Below are positions 1-58,715 of a DNA stretch of 64,000 nt, one piece after another. The notes under the pieces were generated by a model that saw nothing but the letters and a program-made list of their open reading frames with translations, ran no database searches and was not told the DNA's origin. Source of the stretch: Octopus bimaculoides (lineage: Eukaryota). The stretch lies in assembly GCF_001194135.2 (NCBI RefSeq), contig NC_068984.1:57414642-57478641 (forward strand). The letters are read 5' to 3'. The stretch's first letter is position 1, and every line of letters begins with the position of its first letter. Made by a program: the position numbers and the translations under genes.

Positions 1-123
1 TTTATAAGAGCATGGATAGTCAAGTTGGGGCGGGAGTAGTACTAGAACAAGTAACATGGCAGTTAAAAGTTCATATTATGTCACTGGTATACTCTGACTT
101 TGGCCAAGACACTAATCTATTAA

Positions 124-343
124 CCCTTTAACATTCAGATTATTCTGTCAAATGTAATGCTTTTTTATTCAAATTGTTTTGAATTAATCATGCGTTATCT
201 CATAGCTTTGAGGTTTCAATGATGTGATTGTTTATTTTTAGAATATTAGTGTAGGTTAGGTGTGAAAGGCTTCATATAGCCAGTTTGAATGTAAAACATG
301 TAGAATATTTGGGCTGGATATGGCCAGTTTAAATGCTAAAGGG
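124..343. mobile_element. piggyBac-type MITE, family P1
   Basis: TTAA at 120-123 and 344-347. 12-bp TIRs ccctttaacatt / aatgctaaaggg with 1 mismatch. Related copies at 2306 and 13611. Confidence 0.75.
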
Positions 344-1915: not shown

Positions 1916-2305
1916 TGTTATTAAATTATTTTTGGTATTTTGGAATGGTCATCTTTGCTAATAACAAATATACCTCTTTATTACATGCAATCTAACGAAA
2001 ATAGCCTATACACACTTGTTTGATCTGCAAGGAATAGCCTCCAGATCTTCTTAGATTACACCCTATTGTCTTTTAAAAAAGCAGGGAAACATTGGATAAT
2101 GTAGTCTTTGATGAACTGTGACTAAAAAAAAAAGGATGTGATGATCACAGTTTAGGTCTGTTGAATCAGAGCTGACTTGAGAGTTGAACAACTACACTAC
2201 TTCATTATTTATTTAGTTCTGAGTATGCTTTTGCATAAGGAAAATATTTGCTCATTCAATTATAATGTAAGTGGCTGAGTATTTCACAGGCTGTGGTACC
2301 TTTAG

Positions 2306-3085: not shown

Positions 3086-3651
3086 TGAATGTAATCTCTA
3101 GGTTAAGTGAAGAATGACAAGGTTGATCCACTGAATTACAAATACAGGTCCATTCATGGGATTTACACATACTTTCCAGTTTTCAAATTTCTTTGATAGG
3201 AATTAGGTCAACCCATGGTTGAATTAGAAGAGGCTCACTGAGTGTACCACTTAATGGGGTTGCACCTCAGACTACATGATTGTAAAGCAATATTTTTAAC
3301 AGCTTAGCAACGCCTACACTTAATATTGTACAGCAGTAACACACACAAGCATATATACTAATTGATCTATTTTTAATGTCAGTGAAGTAATGTGTGTAGT
3401 GTGTTATTGCTACTAGAAATATCTACTTAATCTCTCTCTAAAACCTTAAAAAACAAAAGGCCCATGAGATAATGTGACCCCAGATATAATGTTTATGGAA
3501 ACGAAAAATGAAAGGTTCAAATGGTCATAACTGGAATGCATCTTCACCATAAATCCACTTGTTCACTGACCTGATTCTAGACAACTTACACACACACACA
3601 CATAATGTTGTGGTTATTTTTTTAGTAACATGTTTGTAGAATGGAAATGTA

Positions 3652-4511
3652 TCGGGTCATCCCATAAATAATGCAGTTTTTTTATACTTCTTTTATTGTT
3701 CAAAATCAAGATAAAGTTCTTTTTTAATCTAAAATATACTCCTTTATATTCTACAACGCTCTTCCATCTATCTGGTAGACTTGCAAGGCCCCTCTTCCAA
3801 AATTCACTTGTCCATGATGAAAAATACTGTTCCACTACTGTTCTGACCTCGTCTACAGAATTCATATTTTTTCCGTCCAAATGATTTTGAAGACTGCAGA
3901 ATAAATGATAATCAGATGGGGCAATGTCTGGCAAATATTCAAACTGTACCAGCTTTTGGAATGTGTATGTGGCTGAGCATTATCCTAATGGAAGAACACC
4001 TTTCGTCTTGAAACCAAAGATGGTTTTTAGTGCTGGTGTCGATGAATGATTGAATGACCAATCCAAGCTTTTCTGCTAGTTTCTCAACAGTTACAATGAG
4101 ATTTTGTTCCACCAGGGTTTGCTGGGTGTCCTTATTGAGCTCTACAGATCTTCCAAGACAAGGCTTGTCTTCTAGGCTGTAGTTTCCTGCTCAGAATTTC
4201 TGGAACCACCATTGACACTGGCTTACGTTTATTGTCCAATCCCCATATACTGCAGTAATATTCCTCGCACTTTCCATTACGTTGTTGCCTTTATTGAATG
4301 TGCCAAATATGCTCCTTTGTCACTTCCATTATAGTTTTGAAAATTAACTGTTAAAATTGAACTGCACTCTTCAGAACTTGCACTAAGAATAAGTACAAGG
4401 TAAAATTACTACCTGCTTTTATAGCAAGTTGATGCAGGTAATTTATTCCGTCCCCCTCTGACTTTTAGTTCATGCAATTGAAAAAACAGCATTATTTATG
4501 GGATGACCCAA
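3652..4511 (-). mobile_element. Mariner transposon, internally deleted (860 bp), with transposase pseudogene
   Basis: 31-bp TIRs (t(c/t)gggtcatcccataaataatgc(a/t)gtttttt, 2 mismatches) and TA duplications at 3650-51 and 4512-13. The - strand encodes a mariner N-terminus from the ATG at 4329, DNAQPHT, and PDIAPSDYHLF...FWKRGLASLPDRWKSVVEYKG. It carries stops and frameshifts. Confidence 0.93.
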
Positions 4512-5349
4512 TATTATCCAATCCGTTCTTTAATTTTTCTGGGTACATCATATATAGTAATGTGTTTTCATTATTTCAAAACATTGCCGTTATCCCTCAC
4601 ATGGCCAATACTATCAGTATGTTTTGTATTATTTAGTAGCCAAATAGACCGACGTATGAAGGCATATTAAAAATACGCATCATAAAGTTATTGTGTGACA
4701 GATGAATTATTCAGTGTTCATCAAAACAGCATTGAATTAAAAAAATTTAAAAAATTGGAAAAGAATTATCTGGTATTGAAAGAATTTCAGAGATCTCACC
4801 TTTAAGATATTATCTCAGTAGCTATAAATCCAAGATAACGTTATAGGGCACAGATGGTTGATATGCTTAATAGTCAAACATTTTCACTGGTGATCTTTAT
4901 TATCTCTGTCTTACTTAGGCACTAAATGTTTATAAATATTGTTGGAGGAACCCTTGCAGTATTTATATGATGTCCTTCCCATTCATATTATATATATGTA
5001 ATACTGAAACTTCCATTCTAAAATGGAATTTTACTTGATAATTTTCACTTCACTTTCCATTATTAGTATATCCATTTATAAATGTTTTCTTTTAATATAT
5101 CTGAGATGAGAATGTTTTTCCAAGTTGGATCAGCAACATAATGTTATTTCACTGTTAAAAAAAATCTTAATATTTATGTTGTTACATGGGGAAATGAACG
5201 AACGTCACACATTCCTTTTCACTTACTGACCTAATTTACAGAATCAAAGGATACCAATTTTACTTAAGTGATTTATTCGTTCACAGAAGTTTGGTCGTTT
5301 AATAAATATATTTTTACATGCTTTCCTTAAAATAGTAATGTAGATGCTT

Positions 5350-6230
5350 TAAATACATTTCCTCACTCGCGCATCAGTACACGTACTTATTTTACTTCCC
5401 TAATGGAATTTGTTTTTTTCACTGATTTTCTTGGAAGGAATTCATGCTGTTTGGATCCAGTCTTAGAGGCTGGTCGCTATTGATTTCTTATTTATGTCTT
5501 AAGTCTATACAAGAGAAGGGATTAATGGGGGAGGAGAGGAGATTTCTTGCATGCTTTCCAAATCGCATAACGGTGCAAGTAAAGGAAAATGCTTGCAAGC
5601 TAGAATCGAAACCGGCTTGCCAAATGTTTATTTCTAATCTTAGGCGCTCTGTTCGTTAATAATCAAACACAGTAGTCGATGTCAGAATTAAATAAGATCC
5701 GCATGTTTATAATTTCGGAAGACACCTACTTGACCCAATATTCTTTGTTAATAAGATATATGTTAACATAGAGATGGAAAGCGGAGACTTTATTTACTTA
5801 GCTGATAAAAGAAGTTAAGTAAATAACACCCTTTTCGGGTTGATTTATGTCCTCTTCATTCATTTTTTCTTGTTATTTTCTGTAACGTGTGGGAGGTTTG
5901 TTTATCTGGGTTTTTTGTTCAGGTGGTGATAGCGTGGATGGGTGAAATAAATAAATAAATAAATGTTATACACTCATTGCCAGATTTATCATGCATAGTA
6001 AATCCCGCTGAAAAACAAAGCTTGTCGTCTAGTGAGAAGGGGTAGAGGGAACAAAGCACTTGTCCTCTACTACTGTTATTATTACTGCTATAGCGGCTGC
6101 TGCCAGGTAGCGCTGTGTTAGCTTCAAAAGCGCTACCCCTCTCCCCTCCTGCTTAACTAACACGGTGACACCGAGAATAGGCATGCACTGTGGTAAATGT
6201 CTCACTAGGCAAAGTCGTGAGGAACGTAAG
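5350..6230 (+). promoter_or_regulatory. Putative promoter / first-exon region
   Basis: Repeat-free and visibly richer in CpG than its flanks (ctcgcgc, aaccggc, taggcgc, tagcgct), ending in a canonical donor. Inference. Confidence 0.35.
6183..6225 (+). CDS. Candidate first exon end (MHCGKCLTRQSREE+c, or non-coding)
   Basis: Perfect donor gaac|GTAAGT with an overlapping second GTAAGT at 6230. It lies at the end of a GC/CpG-enriched block. The ATG at 6183 gives a phase-1 end. Confidence 0.3.
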
Positions 6231-6465
6231 TAAGTTCAGACACTTTTCTATACCATGCTGCAGATGCTGATGCTGCTTGGACTACATCGGAAAGCTTTTT
6301 TGCTAAGATAAAACAAAGAAAAGAAAAAGTGTTTTGCTTCTTAAAGTCTTTCTTTTGATGCGTTATTCGGAGCTATTGACTTTCTGCATGAACCTCCATA
6401 CCTCCAATGACAAATCATTCGCTGATATAATCTCATTCCCTTCACCCTTTTCCAATTCCATAAAC

Positions 6466-6529
6466 ATGGAGCTGGAATTTTGTGACTATTTCAGTAACCG
6501 TTGGAATAATACTTCAGTTCACTTTCTTG
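6466..6529 (+). CDS. Candidate alternative first coding exon (MELEFCDYFSNRWNNTSVHFL+g)
   Basis: aacATGg Kozak context and donor cttg|gtatgt. 64 nt, phase 1. Motif evidence only. Confidence 0.3.
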
Positions 6530-8129
6530 GTATGTACTTATTTCGAACTGATTATTACCTTTTTGCCTTTTATTTATACTAAAAATGTTATACTTCCATA
6601 TAAAAATTTTAGAGTTTACTTCCTGATAATATGTGTGTGTGTGTCTTATGTTGCATGGAATTGTTACAAATGAACCTGAGAAGAGAAGGGACTCCTTTGA
6701 AGTAGATGATGTAAAATAGAAACGAATTATGTATCATATTAGACTTAGTTGTGTTGTTTTACCATTTCAAAACTCCTTGTCACTTAATATACTCGCTGAT
6801 GATACCTTCTCAAGATAACTATCAAAAATACCTGTATATTNNNNNNNNNNNNNNNNNNNNNNNNNNNNNNNNNNNNNNNNNNNNNNNNNNNNNNNNNNNN
6901 NNNNNNNNNNNNNNNNNNNNNNNNNNNNNNNNNNNNNNNNNNNNNNNNNNNNNCTACATTATTGATTATTATATAGTAGGCTATTCTTTAAGAATACACC
7001 CTGAAAATATTCCAGACATTTGCCTAATTATTGTTTTCATTTACATTTTTATTCTGAGGGTCGCTTAGGTAATAATTGCTTTCAAAATGAAAATTTAATA
7101 AAGGCTTAAAGATTTCAAAGAACAGAATTTTTTTGGTAATAATTGTTTCTTAGAACTGATTTCATTTGATGGTCAATTTTTTTTTCTTTATACAGAAATA
7201 TTGGTTAATATAAAGATCTTCACCCGGGAACAAAAATATATATATATAAACTAATTTTGGAATCTTTTATTTTGAATTTGCTATATTTTTCTTTTATTTT
7301 GACGTCTTAAACCGATCTATTCTTAAACCATTCTAATTTTAACTGAATAAAACTTTTTTTTTGTATTCAAATATTGATATTGAGTTAAATTAATATATTA
7401 TAATACTTTCCGATACTACATTAAAGATTGTCCTTGTGTAGAGTAAAATTTTCCATTGCTTGCAAATTACAATCTTATTTTCTCTCAACGAAATCTCTAA
7501 AACAAAATCTATAGTTGCCAAACAATTAATTATCGCTCATTCTTTAAAGAAATGCGGAGACGAGAGTGGGAGAATAACAAAATAAAATTAGCCATAAACA
7601 TTCTTGAAAAGTAAGTTGAGACACATTCTCGGTTTTGGGGCCAGTTCCCTTAAATTAAAGCTGCTGTTCAGTTACTATAGAGCTAGTAGCTTCAATTTAG
7701 GAATAAAGAAATTTAGAGCTAGTAGCTTCAATTCAGGAATTACCAAGCGACATTTTCAAGTAGATGTCATATTGACATTTAGTCACCTGCAGCCCTACAG
7801 AACACCTGTCACAGTTATTTGACGAAAGGGATCTTTTCTTAACTGATGGTAGACGACTTGGTTGTGGCTTCTTCGATTCCTTCTTAATTCGTCTTGATGG
7901 GGAAAAAAAGTTTCTTGTACTGGTTCCTGGGTGTTAAATTCGATATTACTACTGTTGATAATAACAAAGATATAGATTTTTTAAAACTCGTCTTTAAATA
8001 TATCGAGACTGACCTCATTTGTTAAACTCTACTGTATTTTTTTTTCTTTATTTCCATTAAAACTATATTTTCCTATATATAGTATGTGTTTTGATACAAA
8101 AATAGATACTCATTCAAGCGTGAACACAC

Positions 8130-8800
8130 ATATGCGCAACGTTTAAACTAGATTTCTTGTGTGTGTGTGTGTGTGTCGGATTGGCTATTTTGCAAATGTT
8201 TGAAATAAAAATAATGTAGATGTGAACGGAGAGATGTGGAATAAGACAACTATAGTCTGTTAGCATGCTTGGAATATTCAGCTGTAGAAAATTATCACCC
8301 TTGTTGTCATGGCATTCACTACTTCGGTTGTAGCTGTTGCTGCTACTACTACAAGTTCCAGTTTTGTAATTCAATAGTCTCTCCATGACTTCCTGTGGAA
8401 AATCTAACAGAAATCGCTGTTATCAATTTCGACAGAACCAGCATGTCGTGAAAGAATGACAGATCTGAAACGATAATTTTCTTCATTTTTGATTTGGTTT
8501 CTTAACAACTTTGGTAATTATTGGAGTTCTTTGTTTTTGTGATGAGTGTTTTCTTAAATATCTCCCAGTTTTTTTAATTTTTTCTTTTCTCAGACCCTTC
8601 GGTTAAGTTCCCACCCAGTTCAGTTTTATTGTTTGCCTGTTAGTCAGTTACCTACTAGATCTTTACTTAGACTTCTCACAGCATTGAGGAAAAACCGGCG
8701 AATTTTCTTTAACTGTATTACAACTACCATTTCTTCACTCACCCCTCCCACTGTCTGTGAAGTTTCTATTGTTAAAGAAACACCAAGGAGGAAATGTGTA
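8130..8800 (+). other. Putative 5'UTR exons (about 8200-8513 and 8594-?) with an 80-nt intron
   Basis: ATTGG (reverse CCAAT) near 8180, donor tttg|gtaatt at 8514, pyrimidine-rich acceptor ttttctcag| at 8593. No ATG in the frame that stays open after splicing. The 3' end of the second exon is not defined. Confidence 0.3.
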
Positions 8801-11800
8801 TTGGGTTGGTTTATATACAATAGATGTTTACTCATTCTTAATATTAAATCGTATATGTTGTATATGCGTTGTGTGTCTAACATATATATATATATATATA
8901 TATATATTTGAGAGAGAGACTAATTTTGTTATAATTTGAGTTAATCTTAGGGGATTTTAATTTTTCTATTATATCAAAGGATCAATTAGAATATACTTTT
9001 GTGTACGTGTGTAATGTAGGTGGTGGGGTGAGAGATAGATCTTTATACAGTTGGAAATATACTTTGAATCTGAAGTTACTTTCATAATTTTTTTTTAAGT
9101 TGTATTACTGCTATTCAGTTACTTTATTATTTGATTACTTATACAAAAGCGAAAGAAAGCATTAGTGGGACTAGTTTGTAATTCTTGTACATACATTGTT
9201 TCAGAATTTTTTTTTTTAATTCAAGTTCCAAGAAATCCAGAATCTTTTTTTTTTGTTTTTAGTTTGAAGTAATGTTTGCATTAAATTTATTTTAAAAATA
9301 CATATTAAAAATTATGTTATATTCATTTAAGAACAAAATGTTACAAGATATGTTGGCTGTGTCTATACACATGATGATGATATACACACACTCACACACC
9401 ACTAAGTAAGAAGAGTTCCTTATAAATTGACTCTCAGAGCAGCACAAGTTTATTTCCAATTAATAAAATGTAGATAATTTATAAAACATGTATACTTATA
9501 TAACTTTAGCACCTATTTTTTGATAACTATTATGGGTAAATGGACAGTTGGATCATTATTTGGCTAAATAGTTGACTGTCTTGTTTCAATAACTTATTTT
9601 ACAAAGAGAATAGATGACCATCTTATAAACTGTGAGTAGATGTCTTGAAACATATGAAGTTTAATATGAATAGATGAGTTGTGATGGTAGTTTGGAGACA
9701 AAGACTTATTACATGGTTCATTAAGCTGTCCCAAAATAATATTTGGCCATATTATCATTTGTTTTCCTTCAGTATCCATAGAAAGGAAGATTTAACTGAT
9801 ATATCTTTGGAATTATAACAAGAATAAATGAAGCTATACGAAAATATTTCTGTCAACATCTAAACATCTCATGCTGCTGTAAATTGAACTACTGTCTCTG
9901 CTGCTATCAAGAGAAAAGAAACATATGCACATGTGTGTGTGCACGCAGTGACACGTTCCTGCATAGCCAGACATGCACACAATTGCACTCACACACATGT
10001 AGACACTTATACCACATGATTTTATATCAGAATTTACTACCATTTCTTAAGTTCTGTTGTAGAAGTGTTTTTGCTTTCTTGATCAGCTGTAAGGTTTAAA
10101 GCTATGCTGAGTCAGCAGCAACCCCTAATTTATTGTTGAAATCCCTTTTGAAATGAATTTTTTTTTCAAACCGGATAAAGCAGCACTATCTAATGACACA
10201 TTAGTAGTACTGAATAAAACAATATTTATGCATGTGTGAGATCAATATATGAATAAATAGTCCCAACAAGTGGTTGCTTAAACGATGTTTGTGATTCTAA
10301 AATTAGTTTGCTTGGCATCTATTTATGTTCAACATATTCTAAACTCAGATATATAGAGAGAATGAAGTTCAGCATCCTTGGGACTGGCTTTTTTTTTTTT
10401 TCAATTCTCCAAAAGTGGGGACTTCAAATTGGATTCATTTGAATAGAGGACAAGCCTGTAGCTTGCAGTTTCCAGCTCACATTTTCTATATTGATTTTTT
10501 TCATTGACTCTAAGCATCATTTTATAAGGGAGACTCTATAGTAGATTGAATTGACTCCTACACATGACTTTTTGCTCAAAGACAGTCAACTGAGGAAAGG
10601 TTAAATTGAGAATGTGAATGGTTAACTATAAGACATCTAGTTTAGTGATTAACCATTTCTAACATACTACATTAACAATAAAGAAATAAACAATTTTGGG
10701 TCATTTTTACCCATGCAGACATACATATATGCATTTTCAATATGTACTGTTTCCTTTTTTTCTGTTTTAACCAGTTTTCTTTTTTTCTAATGCCCTTTAA
10801 TAATCATTTGTAAATTGTGTAAATTTAGATGCTTAGTTATTAACTAGCAACTGAAATAGCAATTTTTCAAATGAAAATTATCATAATTTTGAGAATTCCT
10901 ACTTTTCTGATTTAGCCACCATGAAACATTAATAAAATACTAAGTTCTACAATTGTTGTAGAAAACCTTAATTATTTAAAACAAATTTCATACAGAAGTG
11001 TATTTTATTTTTTGAAAATCAACCTCCCACATTTATGTATTTATATACATGTGTGGTTGGAGATGTCATTCTGTCAGCTGATGAAGATTAGCAGCAGTAA
11101 TGGTCCATTTAACACAGCACTTGATTGAGGAATTACCTATTCTTGTTGACCTAATTCTTCTTTGAAAATTGTAGCAATACTGATAGCTGAAACCCTTTTT
11201 CCCTCTTTATTGTTACATTCCAATTTCTTTTTGTTCTTTTCTTCCATCATTTGATCTTTACTTCCCTTATTCCACTTATTTCCAGTTTGTTAGTTGGTGT
11301 ACATAGTGCATGGATATTCCTTAATACTTTCCTTGCATTCATCTCTCCCATCATATTTACATCTGTTATGAGCAAGCATAGAAATCTTTTTCCCTTTTTG
11401 TCTCCTCTATCATCGTTATTATCATGATGGTATCAGTTAGATGCACGGAATATTGAAGTAATCAACTGATCGTATCTGCAGCCATTCTTCTCACATATCT
11501 GTAGTTGCTAGTTAATGTTCAGTGGTAGAGGGAGGGTGACCTACCTGTAATAGAAGTATGCCAGTGATGACAATGTGAAGAAAGCATGTCTTTCTGAGAG
11601 GATGTCTTAAAGAAAGGGATCGTGTTGAACTGGATGTAAATTATTGGAAACTAAACAAAATATTGATAAATTTTCCAAGTAATTGATTTTCTATATATTT
11701 CCAGTTTGTCATACTTCACCTTCTCCATTTTTTATTCCTTTAAGTGAAGTGATAAGAGTTAAAGGAGCAGAAGAATTGAGGCACTCTCTTCACACATTCT

Positions 11801-13610
11801 TTTATGTTAATGTCATTTTTTGCTTCAGAACATAAATCAATAATGTAGGGAGAATTAAGGGATTTCTGAAAATACTGAAAATGCTTGGGGAACTAAAAAA
11901 TGCAGTACTTTCTATAATGATACCATGTTAACAGTTCTAATTCGTAAAGGCATTGATATTTCCTTGCAAGACATCTGCTTAGTAATTTGTGTTTTATATG
12001 AATACCAAAATATAATTCTGCAAAATCATATGAAAAGCAAGTGTATTTTCATATATTTAGGAGGAACTGGTACTAAATATCAGTGGGTATTGGATTTGAT
12101 AGGCAAAAATGACTCTGAAAATCTACCATTGTTAGAATTTTAGTGGCCTCATAATTATCTTTCTACTTAAGTGTTTAAAATAATTCCCAATAATAAATGA
12201 AACTCAAAAGAGTTCTTAATTAATTTTGTCTTAATGCAATTAGAAGAGACCATTTAAATTATAACATCATGTTATCTCTTGTGTGCTTGAGAGAGAGTGA
12301 GAGAGAATTATGGAAACAAATTTAATCATTATAAATTTCTATGATTTAAAAAGTTGTAGGGAGCACTGTTGAATTTGCAATTGTTCATTTAGCTGCCAAC
12401 AGAATCATTTTGTGGACTATTAAGAGGGTTAATCACTCATTGAGAAATACTACTAATTAACAAAAGCCAGGCAGTTGTCTCTACATTTATTTCTATGTTT
12501 TGAGAGAAGGTGATATGATGAGTATGCAAAGAATGTATTGCTAAATAGTCTTTGTTCTCAAGGAGATGTTATAGCACAGAGACTATTTGGTAACAGATTG
12601 CATGAAGGTAACCCTTAGATTCATTTCAAGGAATTTTTCTTATATAGAAAACAATTATTTAGAGATTTAGTGCTTTAGTTGTTAAGAGGGAGGCCAAGTG
12701 CACTCTAAGCTTATGAAATAGAATGCCTGACTTGTGAATTATGATAGAGGCAAAATATGAAATATATTTTCTAACCTGAGCAGAAGGTCTCAGTTTTGAA
12801 AGGTAGCTGTAGTCAATTATAACCACTTCAGTATTTGACTGGTATGGTGTATTGAATTCAGAACATTGAGAACTGTAACAAAGCACTGATGCTCTACTGA
12901 TTCTACTATGATCCACACTCGGCTTCCCATTTATTGGTCAAGTTGAAATTAGTCTTTTGACTCGGAACAGGACACTTAATTCTTTGTGCTGCATGTAGCC
13001 ACGTGTAAAGAATACCAAATCTACTAGAAACTTTATATATGCATTAGACTTGCATTTAATTAGAGAATAGATTAAAATTTTCAACTCCAATCTGAAAGGT
13101 ACTTCAGGGGAGAAATACTCAGCATTGTATGCTGTGGCAGCACTAGCATGGTGAGAATGGTCTAACATCAGGATCATTTGCACTACATACACAATAAAAG
13201 TATGGAGTTTTCAGCCGTTCCTCAATGACCAAATTGGGATATGGAGTTTATCAATATTGGATTGCAATTTAGACTTATAGTTTGTAGTAGATTTGGTATT
13301 CTTTACACGTGGCTACAGTACGTTCCATGTACTGAGTTTTTGGAATCTGTTATAGTTTCCACAGAGTTCTTCTGTATAATGCTGGCTCTTTATGTTTTCT
13401 CAAAGCATGTCACTTCAAGCATGCTCATCTAAGGACCTTCTTATTTCAAGACTGAAGCATCAACTAGCCTCTGTGTCTTCCAAGAAATTACCTTCTTTAA
13501 TGGAACATAAAACAAGATGTATTGAATTGCCTGATTAATTACCACAAAACCTCATTTGTATTCATTCTTTATAAGCATTTTAAGCATTTTGTACAAATAT
13601 GGATATCTAA

Positions 13611-13820
13611 CACTTTAGCATTCACATTATTTTGTTAAAAGTAATGCTTATTTATGCATATTATTTTGAATTAGCTTATAGTGTTGAGATTTTGATGAAG
13701 TAACTTAATTTTTACAATGATATTGTAGGGTTGATGTGAGAGGCCAGATGTCACCTCTCACATCAACGTAAAACAAGTAGAATACTTTGGCTGGATATGG
13801 CCAGTTTCAATGCTAAAGGG
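13611..13820. mobile_element. piggyBac-type MITE P1
   Basis: ctaa|cactttagcatt ... aatgctaaaggg|ttaa. The body is homologous to 124-343. Confidence 0.7.
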
Positions 13821-15088
13821 TTAAATCATGCACACATATCTCTCTCTCTCAAACACACACACACACACACACACAGATAGCCAATAGAACTAGTCTTAAT
13901 ATTTTACTGGTGTTTACATTGATCATCCTGAAAGTAAAAGCTTTGAATTTAAAAACAGGTTTTTAACTTTAAAATATAATAATGAAATTGAAAGGAATAC
14001 ACATTTCTTTAACAGTGAAAATGGTAATACAGAAGCTATATAAAGCAAAATACTGTCTGATTTGCAGCAGGAATTTAGAAGATATACAAGCAAATAGCAA
14101 CAATATTGCCAGAAAGGAAGAATATCCAGTTGTTTCTTTGAACGGGCTTAAGATTGAGGCGAGATTGAATCAAATAATCAAAACAAAAAAATAAGGACTT
14201 CATAGTGATTGATCAAAAATGAAAATGTCTCCTAGAATATTTTTTAAGAGCAGGTGCTTAACTTGAATCTTGTTGGGACACCAGTTTTTCTCGACATACT
14301 TGGATGCTTTAGTATATATTGTGTGGTACACTTAAGTAAATTGAGACATGCAGAACTGAGTGTACTGTTCCAAAATACGACAAAACCTCGAGAGGAATCT
14401 CCTAAGTTGTCATTTGGCTTGCTAGAAATAGCAGACAAACTTCCATTGTCTCATCTTACTGTTCTGAGAAAAAACTGAATGGGGATGGCTAGAATATCTT
14501 TGGTCATCAGACTGTTCAATCAAAGCTGATCTGAGACAAACAACACCACCAAGAAAGCCACTGAAGACTTTTCAGTAGATAATTCAATATGACGCCAAAT
14601 AAAAATATCAAGTCATTTTCATAAGTAGAGAAATAACTGTAATATACTGGAATTATATCAGTTGATTAAATTTATTTCCAATCATAAGCATTGTATTTGT
14701 ATAAATAAGATTACTGAAAACTAGTGAGTGATCTGGTTTCAATCCTTCAATCATGCTTTTTTTCATATGTGTACATAACACTGGTCCCAACTCATTCTGC
14801 TCAGAAAAATACTGAGGTTTATTACGTATTCCAAAGATTAAATATGATAATAAAAGTTGTGTATTTCATTGTGACATTGCAAAGTCAAAACATGGGCAAG
14901 TTCATTAATCAGTTCTGTTATAACTTGTTCCTTTCCTTGTACATTTATTTGCATAATACTTTAAAGATTTCTGGTGCATACTCTTCAAGAAGACTTAAAT
15001 ATTTGGGATGCTGTCAGATATGACAATCCAGTTTATCATTTCTAGACATCCCTTTTACCAAGTTGTCCATTTTGTATTTTAGTTTGCT

Positions 15089-15860
15089 ATTTTATGAATA
15101 TGGGGGTAAAGAAAATGACCCACCCTGCAAGCAGTGCAGAACAACTCTTTGCATCCCGAATCACACTTTGACTGGATGCCCTAAGGCACTGGGAGAAGGC
15201 TGATACAATTGCAGAAATAACCAAGTGGATTGATCTGCAAAGGGTAAAGGCTAATAAGCACCAACCACCACTACCAAAGGGTATCAAATTCCTAAAGAAA
15301 GTTGACAAAGCTCCCAAGGTGAGAGCAATGTCTATTTTGTATTCAGTTTCAGACTAGGAGATGCAAGTAAACATGAGGGGCAAACTTGCCTTTCCAGAGA
15401 AGATAGTGGTAACCTCACTTGCACCAGACATGTTCCTACTCCCCAGGAATACAAAAGCAATCATCGTGATCAAACTCACAATGCCCTGGGAGGACAGACT
15501 ATATTTCCCACTAGGTAAAGAAATCAGAATATCAACATTTAGTTGACAAGTCTTTTGTCAAGGGCTGGCATATGGCCTCATTCTCCATTGAAGTAGGCTA
15601 CTACAGCTTACCATCTAGATCAGTATGTTAGTTCCTGCAGAAGATAGGTCTAGAACTTAGACATTTGGAGAAAATTATTGAGGGAATAGGCACAGCAGCT
15701 GAAACTAACTCAAGATGGCTGTGGTTGATAAGAGACTGCAAGTGGATCCCTTCTGTTTTGTGAAGACTGGTCTAGTCTTTGCTGCCTCACTCAGGTGAAG
15801 TGTACAGGCTAAGGGGCAAAATGCTTATGACTTTGAGATACCTGCTGATGATACAAAAGA
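15089..15860 (+). mobile_element. 5'-truncated Hero-type (R2-group, restriction-like endonuclease) non-LTR retrotransposon
   Basis: CCHC knuckle CKQCRTTLCIPNHTLTGC (Cx2Cx8Hx4C), then TSLAPDMFL..KAIIVIKLTMPWE (PD..E motif with E>K), GW..FSIEVG, and RWLWLIR before the stop at 15761-63. Frameshifted. Confidence 0.85.
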
Positions 15861-16100
15861 GTTTCCTGCATTGCAATGGATTTAGAGGAGCTTGCAAAAC
15901 TTCTGAATAGCTCCTACAGTTTCTACATGGAGCAAAGCATCTCTGATGTTTATTTCACCTATTATTCTAGACATTCCTTTTTCCAAGTTATCCATTTTGT
16001 AATTTAGTTGGCTCTTTTGTGAATTCTATTTTTACTCCTCAAGTTTCTATTCCAGTTATAGACAGGTTTTCTAAAATATGTATTTCCTATTTTCTCACAG

Positions 16101-16104
<4 letters not shown>

Positions 16105-16168
<64 letters not shown>

Positions 16169-16178
16169 TATATATATA
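16105..16178. repeat. (TA)n microsatellite, representative of many (TA)n/(CA)n tracts in the window
   Basis: Read directly from the sequence. Confidence 0.95.
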
Positions 16179-18140
16179 ATAAAACAGAGAGATAACAAAT
16201 TATTTGGCTTGCTCACAGTTTTATATTTTTCCTGTATCATTGTTTAGACAAAGGACAATCCAGAGATAAGAAAAAAGTTTGAGATTCTTCTCTTTTTCTT
16301 CTTATCTATAATTTATGTCTGTTTACTAATTTTATAATCCCTTAATTTGTAAAACAGGTTTTCTCTTATTGTTATTATCATTCTTTTTGCATTTAACTGT
16401 TTTATAATCTTAGTTAAATTAAGAATCAAGTTTTTATTTTGACTCCACCCAAAAAGGAACAAGCTGAGCTCATAAATATCTTGTCTTAAAACTTATTAGA
16501 TTAGCTTCATTTTAGTTACTCAACAGTTATTTCATGTTTTCTGTTTGGGAGAAATTCAGTTTAAATCTTTTTAGAATCAATTCATCTGCTTATTTTGAGT
16601 AAGAAAAGGAAGAGTAGATTATTTTTTTCTTCTTTAAATATGAAGCTTTCCTTTCGTGACATGAATTTTAATGCAAATAGTCTCTTTCAAATAGATGTTA
16701 GTTCTATTACATTTTGCTTTGTCAAAAGATTTTTCACTGTGAAAATTGTCTCGCCTTTCTGTTCTGAAGCTTTGGTATTTAGCTATGTTGTTAGAATTTG
16801 TCTAGTTATGCTGCTGAGTTATGTCAGTCTATTGATTTTTTTTTAGGACCCTTTGCTGTTGCAATTAGCAGCTATTGTCAGTTTTCTTACAACATATGAA
16901 GGTTCAGTCATTAGCTATTTTATGATAAATCATGCATTGAAGTAAACCCTAAACATACAACACTGTTCTTGAATTTTGTGGAGGTGTTGGTAGTGGTGTG
17001 GTTGACTTGGGATTATATTCTGATGTTAGTCAATGGAATTGTCTATTAACTCAAACCAAAGATATATCATGTTACAGCACACAAACATATTAAAATGAAT
17101 AATTTAGTTTCATTTATTTAATTTCCAAATAGAGAAAACACCAGATATTAAAACTTAGTACTTTAGTAAAATTTGCTTTTTAATTAGTACATTTTTTCCC
17201 ACCAAAAATTTGTTAGGTAGTCTTTGCAAATGAGGAATTAGTTTCTTCTTTAACAGCATGATAAAGCAATATCTTTAAGAGTGCAATAACAAAAATAATT
17301 GATTTGTGTCAACGTGACGGATTCTCAACCTTGACATTGCAGAATGGTTTATCTCTTACTTTATTTAAAATAAGCTATCTATCATGCATATATGTACTTT
17401 CTGCATTCTCTTGGAAGTACAATGCTGTTTTTGCTTTTGTAATATTTCTATATGCATTTTTCATGCACATTTCTATGGATTTTAGATTTTCTAAAAACTG
17501 TTTTTATTTTAATTTATAAAAGACTTATTTTCAGTTTAAGTGTACTTTTGTCAGGAAGTATAGCACAGACATGTTAGAACGAATAACTTAATTAGCAAAC
17601 ACAAGATGAAAATGTCCTTAAATATCTTTAATGGTGTTTGTGTGTCCAAATATACTAGAACTAATTCTTTTTGACATATTTATGTAATCGTAACCCCATA
17701 ACTAAAAGGAGAATAGGAGAGAGAGAGAGAAATTATTTTAGGTGAGATGATGAGTGTAACATATAAGAGGAACAGATTTTACACATACATGCGCGAATTC
17801 ATTTTAACACCCAGTTCATAAAGTAGCCTCAGCCTATCATCAAGTATCACATGTAATAAGATGTAGACTAGATGTTATACTTTGCTATTATGTTGCTTTA
17901 AGGTTCTGAGTTCAAATCATTCTAGTGGTAATGAAATTTGCATATACCAAGTGTACCTTTGGTATATTTATTATAAAGAAAGGACTACTTGAAGGAGAAA
18001 TCTGTTCATTTCTCTTAATTATGAAATTAATTTGTAGAACGAACTCTTTTCTTCATTCATTCCTTTATTTATTTGTTACAATTGTAAGCATTTTTCAGTA
18101 TAATGTCCTTATCTATTTTTGTTCTTCTTATTCATTCCAG

Positions 18141-18279
18141 ATGTCAACCCCTCACCCTATAAAATCAAGGATTGCCGATCGCAGTGCTTTGACGAAACAA
18201 AAGAAAATTCTTGGACGATCACACAGTATGCCAGAAAACTTAAACAAAATACACAAACGACGCCGAATCCATCCTTCAG
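18141..18279 (+). CDS. ARHGEF4/SPATA13/ARHGEF9-like: Asef/collybistin-family RhoGEF, N-terminal coding exon (MSTPHPIKSRIADRSALTKQKKILGRSHSMPENLNKIHKRRRIHPS+g)
   Basis: Acceptor ttcattccag|ATG and donor tcag|gtaatt. The exon is 139 nt, ends in phase 1 and joins exon 32531 in frame (G+GA = Gly). The peptide resembles the recalled SPATA13 segment FSQSTPIGLDRVGRRR. Confidence 0.8.
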
Positions 18280-18406
18280 GTAATTACAAAATTAGGAATG
18301 TGTGAAATGAATATAATGGATTATGATAGAAGTAATTCAGCAATATTCTTATTGAGGGAAGCTGATATGAGTAGTTAGCACTGTTAACTTTAATGATATT
18401 GATACT

Positions 18407-20810
18407 CATCCTGTCTTGAATTCCTCTGTTATTGCCTAGAGGACTATGATGAATAAGAGGGGGCTGAGGACTGATCCTTGGTGGACCCTACCCGGAATTC
18501 TTCACTGTACTTGTTGCCAACCCTCACCTTACTGACAGCATCCCTGTACATGGCTTGCAGAGCTCTCACTAACCATTCATCTATCCTTAGTTTTCTCATT
18601 GACCACCAGATAAGGGATCGGGGGACCCTGTCAAAGGCTTTCTCCATGTCAATGAAAGCCAGGTGCGAGGTTTATCTTTGGCTAGGTATTTCTCCTGCAG
18701 CTGTCTTAACAGAAATATAACATCAGTGGTGCTTTTCTCTGGCATGAACCCAAACTGCATCTCATCTAAACTGACTCTCTCGCTAATTAGTTGGGCTATG
18801 ACCCTCTCCGTGACCTTCACTACCTGATTCAACAACTTGATACCTCTGTAATTATTTGTATCTAAAGCATCACCTTTACCTTTGTAGCAGTTGACTATGG
18901 TGCTGCTACACCAGTCATTGGGCATGACTCCTTCATGTATCATCTGGTTGACTATACGGGTGACTAGGCTATAGCCAACACCACCAGATATTTTGAGCAT
19001 CTCTGCAGTGATTCCTGAAGGGCCAGGGTCTTTCCCTGTCTTCATACCCTTAATTGCTTTATTTACCAAGGTACTGTCAATTCAGATAGCTGGTCCCTCT
19101 GTTGGGTCGGCATTCAGCAGACTCTCTTTCTCCCATTCATTCTCTTTATTTAGCAACCTTTCATAGTGGCATCTCCAAACCTCACTCTTTGCAGCCTCGT
19201 TTAGTGCAAGCAAACCATTGTCCATGCAGACACATTTATTTCCTACATCATGTTTCTCTCTCACATACTGTCTTGCAACACAAAATACCTCAAGTCTTTG
19301 GTTGTCACGGTGCAGAACATTGGCAACTTTTTTCTTATCTGCTTCCCCTCTGGCTAAATAAACCTGTCTCCTAGCTTCCCTTCTGGCAGTCTAATACAAT
19401 TCCCTGCTACCACAGTTCATCCAGTCCTTCCAAGCCTGTTTCTTTTCCCTGATGGCTCTGTCAACAACATTGTTCCACCACCACATTACCTTGGGTTGAG
19501 AGGGGACTTTGCACCATCCACAGATCTGGTCAGTGGCCCTCGGTAAGTTGTCTCGTAGAAACCTCCAGAAGGTGGTGAGCTGGCAGAAACGTTAGCACAC
19601 CGGGTGAAATGCTTAGCGGTATTTCATCTGCTGCCACGTTCTGAGTTCAAATTCCACCGAGGTCGACTTTGCCATTCATCCTTTCGGGGTCGATTAAATA
19701 AGTACCAGTTATGCACTGGGGTCGATATAATCGACTTAATCCGTTTGTCTGTCCTTGTTTGTGCCCTCTGTGTGTAGCCCCTTGTGGGCAGTAAAGAAAT
19801 AAGAACCCTCCAGTTGTCTTCCACATCATTTAATGCTATCTCCCCCTCTATTTCGTCAAAAGCTTCGAGTAATACATCTCAAAATCTCTGTCCATTCGTA
19901 GGATCTTTAAGCTTCCAGACCCTTCCCCTCCATGCTGGTCGTCTTCTGGGCATCCATTTAGCCCTGATCCTGAAGTCGCTAACTACTAGTCTATATTGTG
20001 GGGTACATTCTTCACCTGGGAAGGTTTTGGCATTTATAAGCAGCCATCTTTCCCTTTTCCTGGCAAGGATAGAGTCAATTTGGTTAGTGTGTCTACCAGA
20101 TCTGTAGGTGACTAGGTGACTGGCAGGTTTCCTGAGTTAGTATTGCAAACCATAATATCATTTGCATCACAGAACTCCAGCAGCCTGGTTCCCTCCTCAG
20201 TGTGGAAACCAAAACTATAGCCTCCATGGAAGCCCCCTGCATGTTGTCCAACATGTCCATTGAAGTCACCAGCCACAAAGAGAAGGTCCCTCTCATTTGT
20301 CAATGAGGTAGTCAGCAAGAGGGTGTTGTAAAATCGGTCTTTCTGTCCATCAGGTTGCCCTGGCTGAGGGGCATAGGCTGAGATAATGGTTGCTAACCCA
20401 TGATGTAACACTTATCTAATCTTAAGTATTCTCTCACAGACTCTCGATTACCTTATCAACCCATTTCTCCACAAGAAGTATGCCCACACCCCCGACCTTG
20501 TCAGTGTTCCCTGCCCATAAAATCTTGTACCTATGCTCTTTGCCTGTGAGGAACCTAGAGGAACCTCCTCTCCATCTTACTTCTTGGATACAACACAAAT
20601 CTACACGTCTCCGTTTAAGCATCTCAACAATCTCACCAGACCTACCTTTCAGTGTGCCAACCCTGAGGGTGTGGGAGGTGTGGGCCTGCGAGACCCTTGG
20701 ATGGGGGACAGCAGCGTTATGTACCTGAAAAGAAAACTCACATTTGGCAGAATTCATATACAAACAACAGCCTTCAATCTGCATCACTACACCATCATTT
20801 TTATGCACTA
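18407..20810 (-). mobile_element. RTE-clade LINE pseudogene (APE endonuclease + partial RT), missing its 3' end
   Basis: LRVGTLKG..DLCCIQEVRWRG, ISAYAPQ, VAGDFNGHVG, KDPGPSGITAEMLK, NYRGIKLL, QFGFMPEKSTTD, EKAFDRVP and QGSVLSPLLF. Homology stops before YADD. Multiple frameshifts. Confidence 0.95.
19569..19801 (+). mobile_element. SINE family A (tRNA-like head) nested in the RTE
   Basis: Head ggtggtgagctggcagaa..gagttcaaattcc. 12-bp TSD agaa(a/c)cctccag at 19557-68 and 19802-13. Removing it restores the RTE peptide DVEDNWRFLRD. Confidence 0.9.
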
Positions 20811-21474
20811 CATGATCACTACCTTACATAGGCGATAAACCCTAAGTAGAGTGGGGATGGCGTTAAGCCATAAGTGTTCATGGGAGACAACCAAAAGATG
20901 TCAGAGGATAGGGACTTCCAGTACAGGTGGTGGGGGTGGAAGGATAGGGACTTCTGGCACAGGTGGCAGNNNNNNNNNNNNNNNNNNNNNNNNNNNNNNN
21001 NNNNNNNNNNNNNNNNNNNNNNNNNNNNNNNNNNNNNNNNNNNNNNNNNNNNNNNNNNNNNNNNNNNNNNNNNNNNNNNNNNNNNNNNNNNNNNNNNNNN
21101 NNNNNNNNNNNNNTGGGTGTACTGTGAAATAGCAGAATTAGAGAAGAACATCGTCTGGATTTGTATTCTTTTGGCAGAGTTATTAAAATGAAGTAGCAGA
21201 ATCCGAGTGAGCTAGTTTAAATAGGGGGAAGCATTGGAGAAACAACTGGTTATTGCAACAGAGAGAGAGAGATAGAGAGGGACCAGGGTTAGGCTGGTCA
21301 AGGATAGAACACAAGGGAGAAAAATATCCTTTTGGGATTTTAGGTAACATTATTTAATGAAACAGCAAATGCTGATAACAGTGAAATAGAATTGAAAACT
21401 CTTAGAATTTTTAGTCAGCCAATCTGTGACAAAATTAGAGAAATAAGTGATGATGTGACAAAATTGAATAAATG

Positions 21475-24323: not shown

Positions 24324-24480
24324 GCGTGGTTGTGTGGTAAGAAGCTTGCTTTCCAACTATATGGTTCTGGGTTCAGTTCCACTGCATGGCACCTTGGGCA
24401 AGTGTCTTCTGCTATAGCCTTGGGCTGACCAAAGCCTTGTGAGTGTATTTGGTTGACGGAAACTGAAAGGAGCCCGTTGA

Positions 24481-24524
<44 letters not shown>

Positions 24525-24740
24525 TTCTGTGTGTGTCTGTATTCGTCCCCACTATTGCTTGACAACTGATGCTTGTGTGTTTATGTCCCCATAACTTAGC
24601 AGTTCAGCAAAAGATACCGATAGAATAAGTACTTGGCTTACAAAGAATCAGTCCTGGGGCTGATTTATTCGACTAAAACCTTTTAAGGTGGTGCTCCAGC
24701 ATGGCTGCAGTCATTTAGTATCTAAACAAGTAAAAGAATA
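24324..24740 (+). mobile_element. SINE family B (gtggttgtgtggtaagaagcttgcttcc head, internal (TA)n)
   Basis: Near full length. Homologous to copies at 29461, 48424 and 58505. Confidence 0.85.
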
Positions 24741-27090: not shown

Positions 27091-29460
27091 TTCAATCAGC
27101 AGTATTCTATGTTTTCAATAATTGAGTTAGTTTTGTATAAAAAGTCATTCTAGTTGTTGTTGCAAATTATGCCCTAATTTATCGAATGTCACAAACATTA
27201 GGTAAATCTCTTAATCTTGTTTCTGTTCTCATCTCTTTCTTGCTTTTGATTAAAGTAGGATCTCTTATCACTGAGCAAATAGTTTACACATTTCTTTAAT
27301 GATGTAAGAGTTTTTCTTTTGCACCAGTTGTACATTCTTACACTACTCACAGGTTAATCTTATCTTGCTCTAAATTCTATTATTAGAAAATCATTCCTTC
27401 TGCTCTTGATATTTTGTTTATACTTCATTTAGTCTTTAGAAGGAAGGTGGCAATTCTTGCAACTTTCTAACAATCCAATTATAGATACAATCTGGTCTTT
27501 ATCATCTGATATATAATAGCCAAAACTCACTTCTGTTTGTTAAAAGAGTGAAGAGGAAAATGGAGATTTGGTAATTTTGTTGATGCTTTTCTGTTGTACT
27601 GTCAACCAAAATGTTTTCCTGAGATACTCTGTCGGAAAACAAATTAGACCATTCCACTTGACAAAATATATCATTTAGACTTTTCTTTAAGTGGAAGGTT
27701 ACTTCTCTGCATTTGAATTATCAGTTTTGGCCAGCTGTTATTTATGTCTAAATTATTATATAGAACTACCACCCATGGAAATGTTGATTGTATTTTTCAC
27801 AAGATTTTTATTTAGTAGTTATTTACAATATCTTGTATAAGAATAAGAAGTGAAATGGTTATGTCTTTACAGGATATTGAGAAATGAGAAAATTTACCTT
27901 AACTGTAAATGTTTTGTTTTACAAGCCTGCAAGGAAGCCTTTGTATAGTTACTTGACCCTCTAAAAATAGCAACCAAATCTCCCTTAAATCACATTCTGA
28001 CTTAAGAAAAGGAAGGTTCATATAAAAGTAGTTACAGATATATGAGCTCTAAATAACCTGGAATGGTCATGGTTTGGATACCTTTGGTCAATACATCTAC
28101 TGGATTAGAGTTGATCTGAAGCTAAATAACATTTGTTTTTAAAATCAAGGTTATTTTATGTGCAAAAACAGACATTTGTACATAGATCTCATGTATGATG
28201 TTGTACACATGAGTTAATTAATTTGCTAATGATCTCCTTTTGTAATTTAGCAATATAGTTTCTTGTTAGTAAGTCTGGAGCATTAGACATCATACTAGTA
28301 TTTCTGTCATGGCAGTTGATCTATGGTAAATATAACATAATGAATAATTATTATTTGTCCGCTTTCAGTTTTATCTGGCTACTGGCTAAATTTAGCAGAG
28401 TTTAATACTTCGAAAATAACCTTCCTTCTATTAATGTAAACTAACTATCATGTATCCTTATTATTTTATCATTCATTTTTATATTCATGCATTACATGAA
28501 TATATCTGCAATAAATATCATATCATGCATTTCAAGTTTGCATCATCTCACTTAGGAAGCCCAATGTTTTCAGGTCTTACTTAACCACTTCTTCCCAATA
28601 TGACATCAGGTTATACTTTTACATTTGGTATTTTTCGCCATCAAATCACATCTTGTTACCAAGCCTCTGTAGTGCTGGTACCATAATAAATATGGACAGT
28701 CCATTCCATAAGAGCAGATAAAACTGGTACATTGAATACATCCAGTCAACTCAGTCCTGATAGTTTGTATTAGGAAAGATTTTCATAACTTTTGGTTTAC
28801 AATCTAAACAATCCAGACATACACATATCTAATATGTACTAGTGTATCTAGTGCATATTAGATTTTTAATAAGTAAATTTTTTAAAGCCTACAATTTACT
28901 TGTAAAAAATATTTTAATATAAAGTATGACTCATTGCAGAATTAGTCCTACAAATATCTGTCCTAAACAATAATACAATGTGGCAAAAGTTGTTACTTTT
29001 ACTATCAATTTATGGGCGAAGAAGTATGGTCTTTAAATATAGCTCAGAAAACATTTCAATGTATTCATTCCTCATTTTTTTTGGGTTTTTTTTTGTTAGT
29101 TTGCAAAGGAATTAGTTGAGATTGAAGTTTAAAAGTTATTCACAAGTTACTGAGTTCTTATTTCCTGAGTAACAAAACTATAATAATTTTTTTTAAGGAT
29201 TTTCTTTGCCATTTTCACCAGTTTTGTACTAACTGCAGCTATGTCAAATGATAAATGATATGCCAGCTGATTATTGCTTGTCATTGGGTATACTTAACAA
29301 ACCAAAGTATTTATTTCCAAATATTTTTAGTGGATATGTAACATAATTCTGTTTCCACAATACTTAGTAGTGTAGTCACTATTTATAACAAGTTATACCT
29401 TAGTTGTTTTTTTTTTTGGTGTGTGTGTGTAGTGGAGGGTCACTTATTTTTTTGTGCATT

Positions 29461-29818
29461 ATCTTTTACTTGTTTCAGTCATTAGACTGTTGCCATGCTG
29501 GGGCACCACCTTGAAGTTTTTAGTCAAATGAATCAACCCCAGTACTTAATTTTTTTAAAGCCTAGTACTTATTCTATCGGTCTCTTTGGCTAAACTGCTA
29601 AGTTATAGGGTTGTAAACAAACCAACACTGGTGGTCAAGTGATGGTGGGAGACACACACATATGATGCTGGCTTCTTTCCGTCCCTGTCTTCCAAATCCA
29701 CCCATAAGGCTTTGGTCAGCCTGAGGCTATAGTAGAAGACACTTGCCCAAGATGTCACATTGTGGGACTGAACCCAGAATCATGTGGTTGGGAAGCAAAC
29801 TTCTTATCACAAAGTCAT
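29461..29818 (-). mobile_element. SINE family B
   Basis: Reverse complement matches 24324-24740. Confidence 0.85.
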
Positions 29819-32530: not shown

Positions 32531-32676
32531 GAAGTGATCCACTTTCTGACTTGCTCTCTCAGCACTCAACAAATGACGATTCTTCAGACGAATCAGAAGT
32601 CTCAATGGATTACAGTTTACCAGACAAGTGTCACAGCACCCGAACGTCACAGTTGGGGCTGGCTCCACTGGATGAG
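32531..32676 (+). CDS. ARHGEF4/SPATA13/ARHGEF9-like: RhoGEF exon: acidic Ser-rich linker and pre-SH3 region ((G)SDPLSDLLSQHSTNDDSSDESEVSMDYSLPDKCHSTRTSQLGLAPLDE)
   Basis: Acceptor gtgatttcag|ga and donor gatgag|gtaatt. 146 nt, phase 1 in and phase 0 out. QLGLAPLDE|IFET parallels the recalled Asef EQLAINE|LISD just before the SH3. Confidence 0.85.

Positions 32677-58676: not shown

Positions 58677-58715
<39 letters not shown>

Follow-up and report, generated by a model that had tools for sequence, protein, structure and literature searches.

In Cdc25C, phosphorylation of Ser216 by Chk1, C-TAK1/MARK3 and other kinases leads to 14-3-3 binding and cytoplasmic retention, and the bound 14-3-3 interferes with a nearby nuclear localization signal (NLS). 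At the class IIa HDAC sites HDAC4 Ser246 and HDAC5 Ser259, the sequence L-R-K-T-A-S-E-P-N-L-K is followed by a basic NLS, which 14-3-3 masks. Asef and Asef2/SPATA13 belong to the Rho-family guanine nucleotide exchange factors (RhoGEFs; GEF, guanine nucleotide exchange factor); they link the tumor suppressor APC to Rac/Cdc42 and are known mainly through two routes of control, namely APC-relieved SH3 autoinhibition and PI3K-dependent membrane recruitment. Here, we analyze a stretch of 64,000 nucleotides from the genome of Octopus bimaculoides (contig NC_068984.1, positions 57,414,642 to 57,478,641 of the forward strand; hereafter the window), in which one exon of the Asef-type RhoGEF gene LOC106874706 encodes a conserved, Cdc25C-like serine motif. 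Our reading of this motif as a kinase and 14-3-3 docking site is one to which we attach about an even chance.

With positions numbered from the acceptor serine, the octopus motif shares L(-5), R(-3) and a downstream basic region with Cdc25C Ser216. It differs in being embedded in an SH3-DH-PH protein, in having its basic cluster only 10 residues past the serine, and in being known from sequence alone. The class IIa HDAC sites are alike in the succession of a hydrophobic residue at -5, a basic residue at -3, Ser or Thr at -2, the serine, x-P, an aliphatic residue and a basic cluster; they differ in belonging to another protein family and in placing the aliphatic residue at +4, where the octopus GEF has it at +5. 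Furthermore, an NLS adjoins the HDAC sites, whereas an NLS role for the octopus cluster is putative.

Two Dbl-family GEFs provide a comparison closer to the octopus protein. GEF-H1/ARHGEF2 is regulated by 14-3-3 (Zenke et al. 2004, as cited in PMC4594598), and AKAP13/AKAP-Lbc possesses a 14-3-3 site at Ser2467 (PMC10099770). In both, as is proposed here for the octopus protein, docking of 14-3-3 is created by a kinase within disorder outside DH-PH; unlike either, the octopus GEF has up to three conserved RxxSxP sites before the module formed by its putative APC-binding region (ABR) and SH3 domain. The mode-1 14-3-3 motif is defined in the same source, where disorder is given as a positive predictor of true sites (PMC10099770).

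Results

The element under study, which we term site 2, is the peptide LGRSHSMPENLNKIHKRRR, translated from positions 18210-18266 of the window on the forward strand. Its candidate acceptor is the starred serine of RSHS*MP, encoded by the AGT codon at 18225-18227 (forward strand). Around this residue the octopus sequence reads L(-5), R(-3), S(-2), S(0), P(+2), E(+3), L(+5), N(+6) and K(+7), so that RSHSMP satisfies the mode-1 form R-S-x-S-x-P (general form RxxS/TxP). From +10 to +13 follows the basic cluster KRRR (18255-18266, forward strand), which conforms to the pattern of a monopartite NLS, K-[KR]-x-[KR], but could just as well be a polybasic membrane patch.

A profile hidden Markov model (HMM) of the linker region alone, used in an exhaustive HMMER search among 1.84 billion representative proteins, returned 39 proteins at a cut-off of E<=1e-3. 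Orthologs with the linker region came from bivalves (Pinctada, Tegillarca, Sinanodonta, Mya) and gastropods (Pomacea, Haliotis, Patella, Arion, Candidula), and from the nemertean Tubulanus, the brachiopod Lingula, the annelid Paralvinella, the scorpion Centruroides, amphioxus, hagfish and a teleost. The alignment of molluscan, other lophotrochozoan and vertebrate proteins that the sequence-only reading of this DNA had proposed thus finds the motif conserved in bivalves, in gastropods and beyond them. In the form L-x-R-S-x-S-x-P-x-x-[LI]-[DN]-[KR] followed by a basic cluster, it recurs in molluscs, nemertean, brachiopod, annelid, scorpion and amphioxus, with exceptions for the cluster that are given below. 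A word-indexed search with a 12-phylum alignment added no further cephalopod and no full-length human protein, only short fragments; this kind of search is insensitive, the exon A query having come back empty even though two proteins (P0001 and P0027) share nine 5-mers with it.

Column counts around the serine were made over 18 sequences. Ser(0) and Pro(+2) are present in all of them, and upstream of the serine position -5 is Leu in 13 (L, V, I or M in 16), position -3 is Arg in 13, so that RxxSxP is found in 13/18 orthologs, and position -2 is Ser in 15. The residue at +1 divides by lineage, being Met in ten sequences, all molluscs, and Thr in four, all chordates. Further downstream, Glu (11/18) or Asp (2/18) occupies +3, Asn(+4) is variable across the family, +5 is Leu (15/18) or Ile (3/18), +6 is Asp in 13 and Asn in three (octopus and hagfish only), and +7 is Lys, Arg or His in ten, four and three sequences, respectively. 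Positions +10, +11 and +12 are basic in 17, 15 and 15 of the 18. Among invertebrates, conservation is highest at the hydrophobic L(-5), at R(-3), at the two serines S(-2) and S(0), and at P(+2). These are the positions that define a site for a basophilic kinase of the CAMK group and a mode-1 14-3-3 site, and the pattern is the one expected of such a site.

A full-length alignment of 13 species gives the same emphasis. Of all columns that precede the SH3 domain, just three are invariant, and in the numbering of the short protein models discussed below these are Ser2, Ser29 (the candidate acceptor) and Pro31. The mean top-residue fraction in this alignment is 0.57 for the motif and 0.69 for the first ten residues of its exon, compared with 0.36 for the remaining linker and 0.78 for the SH3 domain. 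AlphaFold2, run on the 13-sequence alignment, assigns residues 1-101 a predicted local distance difference test score (pLDDT) of about 30 (block means 27-35, below 50) and no secondary structure, and gives the SH3-DH-PH module scores of 80-95. The 3168-residue octopus protein contains two matches to RxxSxP, both of which are full RSxSxP sequences (0.1 expected) and both of which are conserved. In these alignments the conservation of the motif spans Bilateria and falls outside annotated domains, and it has the hallmarks of a short linear motif that is functional, set in a linker predicted to be disordered.

Divergence is concentrated upstream of the serine in vertebrates and in stylommatophoran snails. 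The sequence-only reading had quoted a SPATA13 string, SQSTPIGLDRVGRRR, which is recovered exactly as FSQSTPIGLDRVGRRR in an unlabelled cDNA-type sequence (P0107) and as SQSTPIGLDRVGRRK in Oryzias spata13. The former, which reads ...FRPFTFSQSTPIGLDRVGRRRQMRASN... and matches macaque SPATA13 at 91% identity where the two overlap, and the latter, which reads ...VLSQSTPIGLDRVGRRK..., show that L(-5) and R(-3) have both gone in teleost and mammal-type SPATA13. Hagfish and the stylommatophoran snails have lost R(-3) and retained L(-5). S-x-P-x-x-L-[DN]-[KRH] nevertheless persists in vertebrates and stylommatophorans alike, as does the basic cluster. In the chordates (4/4), Thr(+1) forms a T-P dipeptide with Pro(+2), and this suggests, on sequence grounds, a move to proline-directed phosphorylation. 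The ancient conservation that had been proposed for the motif, and its alignment with vertebrate SPATA13, are borne out, with Ser(0) and Pro(+2) kept in every sequence counted; Arg(-3), however, is lacking in vertebrates and land snails, and what vertebrates have conserved is not the canonical site.

Three primate SPATA13 fragments (P0005, P0014, P0015) carry different N-terminal peptides, with alternative first exons joined just after the motif exon. As read from these fragments, the vertebrate motif is isoform-dependent, with alternative promoters giving isoforms that have it and isoforms that do not.

Site 2 lies in exon A of LOC106874706 (18141-18279, forward strand; 139 nt, phase 0 to 1), which encodes MSTPHPIKSRIADRSALTKQKKILGRSHSMPENLNKIHKRRRIHPS(G), residues 2558-2603 of XP_052823048.1, between the strong acceptor ttcattccag|ATG and the donor TTCAG|gtaatt. 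Because of its length of 139 nt, skipping of exon A alone would cause a frameshift. Three further coding exons follow on the forward strand. Exon B (32531-32676; 146 nt, phase 1 to 0) encodes DDSSDESEVSMDY together with an S-x-R-x-S island, and an ABR-like segment begins in it (LAPLDE); exon C (57332-57511) encodes the remainder of that segment and the SH3 domain (IFETENLTYAEALWDHVTMD...FVR; Pfam SH3_2, E=6.5e-12) and matches the full-length octopus protein at 95-100%; and exon D (61926-62114) encodes the linker between SH3 and DH together with the first helix of DH (the RhoGEF domain), matching residues 2713-2775 of the same protein at 100%. The four exons join in frame, with AG/GT at every boundary.

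The full-length protein (P0028 in our set) is RefSeq XP_052823048.1, an Octopus bimaculoides entry annotated as 'uncharacterized protein LOC106874706 isoform X5', and tblastn places exactly four of its exons, A to D, on the window. The spliced model of exons A, B and C is 100% identical to its residues 2558-2678; hence exon A, in the frame that had been read from the DNA alone, is also used in an independent gene model. Bivalve orthologs find the same exons by tblastn (exon A, E=3e-10 with Pinctada; exon B, E=2e-4 with Tegillarca). No coding exon was detected by tblastn with bivalve and octopus proteins at 1-18140, and the upstream exon coding for ...KARRVLDDK lies outside the window.

Pfam identifies SH3 (2664-2713), RhoGEF (2755-2932, E=1.8e-48) and SOS1_NGEF_PH (2960-3068) domains in the octopus protein and no domain in its first 2,560 residues. 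The best PDB matches of the spliced model are ARHGEF4/Asef (2pz1 and 2dx1, E=1.9e-34) and ARHGEF9/collybistin (4mt6, 7.7e-31), with the SH3 domains of ARHGEF7 and intersectin matching more weakly (about 1e-8). Exons C and D align with the Asef structures 2pz1/2dx1, exon D also with collybistin. The AEALWDHVTMD signature specific to the Asef subfamily is present, and source annotations name the gene ARHGEF4. By these sequence matches, LOC106874706 is an SH3-DH-PH RhoGEF of the ARHGEF4/SPATA13 (Asef) type. In the Asef subfamily the ABR directly precedes the SH3 domain and binds the armadillo repeats of APC; HMMER further aligns the octopus segment LAPLDEIFETENLTY with the Asef ABR (AINELISDGSVVC), at low identity.

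The sequence-only reading had placed the motif at the N-terminus and called its serine S29, a description that is true only of older, partial UniProt models; RefSeq adds about 2,560 residues in front. The models in question, A0A0L8GUH0 (562 residues) and A0A0L8GUH3 (611 residues), each labelled 'Rho guanine nucleotide exchange factor 4', start at the exon A methionine, so that the candidate acceptor is Ser29 in them and residue 2586 of 3168 in RefSeq, about 78 (75-80) residues before the SH3 domain. This methionine belongs to a second conserved block, is internal in almost all orthologs and is replaced by Leu in Arion, Candidula, Centruroides and Myxine; given the leucine in these four species, it is not a conserved initiator. 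The short UniProt models probably represent truncations of a protein some 3,170 residues long. Invertebrate Asef/SPATA13 orthologs in general (P0028, P0030, P0031, P0032, P0052) are giant, with 2,600-5,150 residues and a long domain-free N-terminal extension.

The sequence-only reading had recognized site 2 and overlooked two further conserved RxxSxP sites in the same protein. The first of these, site 1, is MSTPHPIKSR (18141-18170, forward strand), the first ten codons of exon A. It belongs to the block [RR][ML]-S-T-P-[HQ]-P-I-[KT]-x-R, for which the fuller consensus is [K/R]-x-R-R-[M/L]-S-T-P-[H/Q]-P-I-[K/T]-x-R. Its Ser2 is invariant in 13/13 species, with Pro4, Pro6 and Ile7 conserved in 11/13, and in most protostome orthologs a preceding RR turns it into RRMSTP, an RxxSxP sequence. 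The distance from site 1 to site 2 is 27-31 residues (27 in Pinctada, by inspection). The other additional site, encoded outside the window, is RRSLSLP, found at residue 2365 of the octopus protein, 3947 in Haliotis, 3089 in Sinanodonta and 95 in Mya; in molluscs it lies about 220-700 residues upstream of site 2, and similar strings occur in Lingula, the scorpion and amphioxus. It is the only RxxSxP besides site 2 in the octopus protein.

Downstream of site 2, by about 25 residues, exon B contributes an acidic, serine-rich and CK2-like island within DDSSDESEVSMDY, of the form DDSSDESE[YF]S.D. Both this island and the S-x-R-x-S island are recognizable from molluscs to vertebrate SPATA13 (DDNGSEEDFSYEDL).

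The remainder of the window is AT-rich (32% GC) and contains assembly gaps, microsatellites and transposon remnants. The intron directly after exon A holds a decayed retroelement of the long interspersed nuclear element (LINE) type (18447-20823, reverse strand; GC 0.39-0.43), whose open reading frame (ORF) fragments give weak Pfam matches to Exo_endo_phos and Exo_endo_phos_2 (endonuclease) and to RVT_1 (reverse transcriptase). A repeat of about 370-415 bp, resembling a short interspersed nuclear element (SINE), occurs at 24324-24736 (reverse), 29459-29817 (forward), 48420-48790 (forward) and 58495-58808 (reverse); the copies are 71-77% identical, and TA-rich microsatellites adjoin most of them. 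The window yielded no tRNA genes. ORF fragments at 3617-4190 (reverse strand) resemble a mariner/Tc1-type transposase by eye (for example DYHLFCSLQNHLDGK), with no Pfam match at E<=0.01. Runs of N at 6841-6953, 20970-21113, 37466-38010, 54875-55037 and 60809-60818 are mostly flanked by microsatellites of the TA/TATG type, and owing to these five gaps the intron sequence between the exons is incomplete.

Discussion

Taken together, our findings suggest that the single invertebrate RhoGEF of the Asef/SPATA13 type carries site 2 in a linker modelled as disordered, and that this site, with a probability that we put at about one half, is a kinase and 14-3-3 docking site upstream of an ABR-SH3 autoinhibitory module. 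CAMK-group kinases (Chk1, MARK/AMPK-related, PKD, CaMK and MK2) prefer a hydrophobic residue at -5 and arginine at -3, and from the residues at these positions kinases of the Chk1, MARK, PKD and MK2 types are reasonable first candidates. A basophilic kinase of this group would phosphorylate the invariant serine, and the R-S-x-pS-x-P so formed would be a mode-1 dock for a 14-3-3 dimer. Site spacings of 27-31 residues suit bidentate 14-3-3 binding, and the second groove of the dimer would probably be filled by RRMSTP at that distance or by RRSLSLP further upstream; with one or two extra conserved RxxSxP sites at suitable spacing, a bidentate dimer is the most economical model. Once bound, 14-3-3 would cover or neutralize the basic cluster 10-13 residues downstream of the serine and thereby shift the GEF between the cytosol on one side and the membrane or nucleus on the other. 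It might also affect how readily APC reaches the ABR-SH3 module close by. That masking of an NLS or a membrane patch is the outcome is a tentative proposal, made by analogy and in itself doubtful.

Several observations weigh against a kinase and 14-3-3 site. Vertebrates possess V, L or F at -3 without any arginine there, and the stylommatophoran snails have His at -3 and Ala at -2. As judged from the alignments, the most deeply conserved part of the motif differs from the kinase/14-3-3 determinant, with L(+5), D/N(+6) and K/R(+7) unaccounted for by the mode-1 motif. The basic cluster is missing in the scorpion ortholog and weak in the nemertean one. At site 1, the octopus RefSeq isoforms have DDK (...KARRVLDDK) in front of the site and no arginine there. 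The short isoform of mammalian Asef2, in which the cluster reads GRRR, is listed as cytosol/plasma membrane; GRRR thus appears not to be a dominant NLS in Asef2. The searchable literature reports neither the site 2 motif nor an interaction with 14-3-3 for Asef, for Asef2/SPATA13 or for the invertebrate orthologs; the vertebrate site 2 peptide string is not found there, and nothing links SPATA13/ARHGEF4 to 14-3-3 beyond incidental co-mentions. A match to the consensus is, moreover, frequently a 'red herring', in that 14-3-3 fails to bind (PMC10099770). SPATA13 has been found in nucleus and cytoplasm, and the nuclear targeting of its long isoform is ascribed to another predicted NLS (PMC7233598).

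The persistence of the downstream half invites an alternative, a serious one that we nevertheless consider improbable, in which the motif is a dock for another partner, with the core S-x-P-x-x-[LI]-[DN]-[KRH]-x-x-[RK]3, and 14-3-3 is secondary or specific to certain lineages; the S-T-P of chordates would then perhaps be a proline-directed site. Pro(+2) and [LI](+5) are present in 18/18 sequences across Bilateria, Asp or Asn(+6) in 16/18 and Lys, Arg or His(+7) in 17/18; the basic cluster persists as well, and this persistence includes hagfish, teleost and mammal-type SPATA13. Thr(+1) creates the T-P dipeptide in all four chordate sequences. The downstream half, however, matches no known motif class among those checked by eye, and 13 of 14 invertebrate upstream halves fit the kinase/14-3-3 consensus at least equally well. 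The classes compared in this way were SxIP/EB1, PP1 RVxF, PP2A-B56 LxxIxE, paxillin LD and calmodulin 1-5-10, each of which was rejected because its required positions do not fit.

It is also conceivable, and to our mind just as improbable, that the region is a phospho-regulated polybasic switch that operates without 14-3-3, the added negative charge directly weakening the hold of the patch on acidic phospholipids, on importin or on the DDSSDESE island. Such a switch would make sense of basic residues at +10 to +12 that are kept in 15-17 of 18 sequences, of an acidic island conserved from molluscs to vertebrates and of the disorder predicted by AlphaFold2, and the many consensus-like sites that fail to bind 14-3-3 (PMC10099770) also speak for it. 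Nevertheless, one phosphate placed 10 residues from a cluster of charge +4 amounts to weak electrostatics, and a charge switch would have no need of Pro(+2), which is invariant, or of Ser(-2), which nearly is, both being features specific to the 14-3-3 type.

The sequence-only reading had also remarked that A-to-I (adenosine-to-inosine) editing of the acceptor codon would give glycine. As a fact of the codon table this holds, AGT becoming IGT and being read as GGT (Gly), and recoding is described as extensive in coleoid cephalopods in PMC8382921. A regulated recoding site that turns the motif off in some transcripts is nonetheless very improbable: the 300 nt at 18061-18360 fold worse than shuffled sequences (z=+1.28, with 185/200 shuffles at least as stable), no inverted repeat with exon A occurs within 16200-20300 (about 2 kb on each side), and the gene is not listed in the searchable supplements of PMC8382921.

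The likeness to Cdc25C, which the sequence-only reading had pointed out, is real as an identity and coincidental beyond the motif class. The CHKtide peptide is printed as KKKVSRSGLYRSPSMPENLNRPR (PMC2956624), and compared with it and with the Ser216 site (LYRSPSMPENLNR), RSxSMPENLN of the octopus is identical at 9 of 10 residues. The GEF family as a whole has no more than R, S, S, P, E and L in common with Cdc25C. Given a Met(+1) specific to molluscs, an Asn(+6) confined to octopus and hagfish and a variable Asn(+4), the 9/10 identity is best described, from the alignments, as convergence on a motif class combined with lineage-specific coincidence. Homology to Cdc25C was considered and rejected, as the octopus protein has no Cdc25/rhodanese domain and the similarity is limited to RSxSMPENLN. 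The more radical view, that the resemblance arose by chance in a non-functional stretch of linker, can draw on the ease with which short motifs arise in S/R/K-rich disorder and on the two unconserved asparagines behind the match, but it is effectively refuted by the invariance of Ser(0) and Pro(+2) over protostomes and deuterostomes against a linker mean of 0.36 and by the two conserved copies of RSxSxP where 0.1 are expected.

The kinase and 14-3-3 reading also invites comparison with a phosphorylation site within Asef2 itself. The one case of phospho-regulation mentioned in the searchable literature is that of Asef2/SPATA13 at Ser106, where phosphorylation reportedly regulates migration and adhesion turnover, as the title of a 2014 study by Evans et al. 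(J Proteome Res) has it. Like site 2, Ser106 lies in the linker between the N-terminal region and the ABR-SH3 module; presumably it stands, in the numbering of the 652-residue isoform, within GGTEPS, about 28 residues after the serine of SQS*TP, and it thus appears to be a residue different from the equivalent of the site 2 serine.

It is tempting to speculate further that the ancestral bilaterian Asef/SPATA13 was a giant, mostly disordered protein bearing a multi-site 14-3-3 clamp (RRSLSLP, RRMSTPHPIK and LxRSxSxP with its basic patch) at a fixed distance before ABR-SH3, through which 14-3-3 gated localization and activation by APC. Vertebrates would then have given up the basophilic half of site 2 and handed the site, now S-T-P, over to proline-directed kinases, and alternative promoters would have rendered the motif optional. 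We regard this scenario in its entirety as a decidedly long shot.

The value of these findings lies in a testable hypothesis and not in a new principle, given that 14-3-3 control of RhoGEFs and the masking of basic patches are both well known. Mutagenesis can now aim at precise residues: Ser(0) and Pro(+2), those of the basic cluster, and those of the partner sites. The reading of the octopus gene is also corrected, in that a long protein of about 3,170 residues probably stands behind the short 'ARHGEF4' models. If the motifs upstream of ABR-SH3 are truly of the kinase/14-3-3 type, they would provide the Asef GEFs with a second, APC-independent input.

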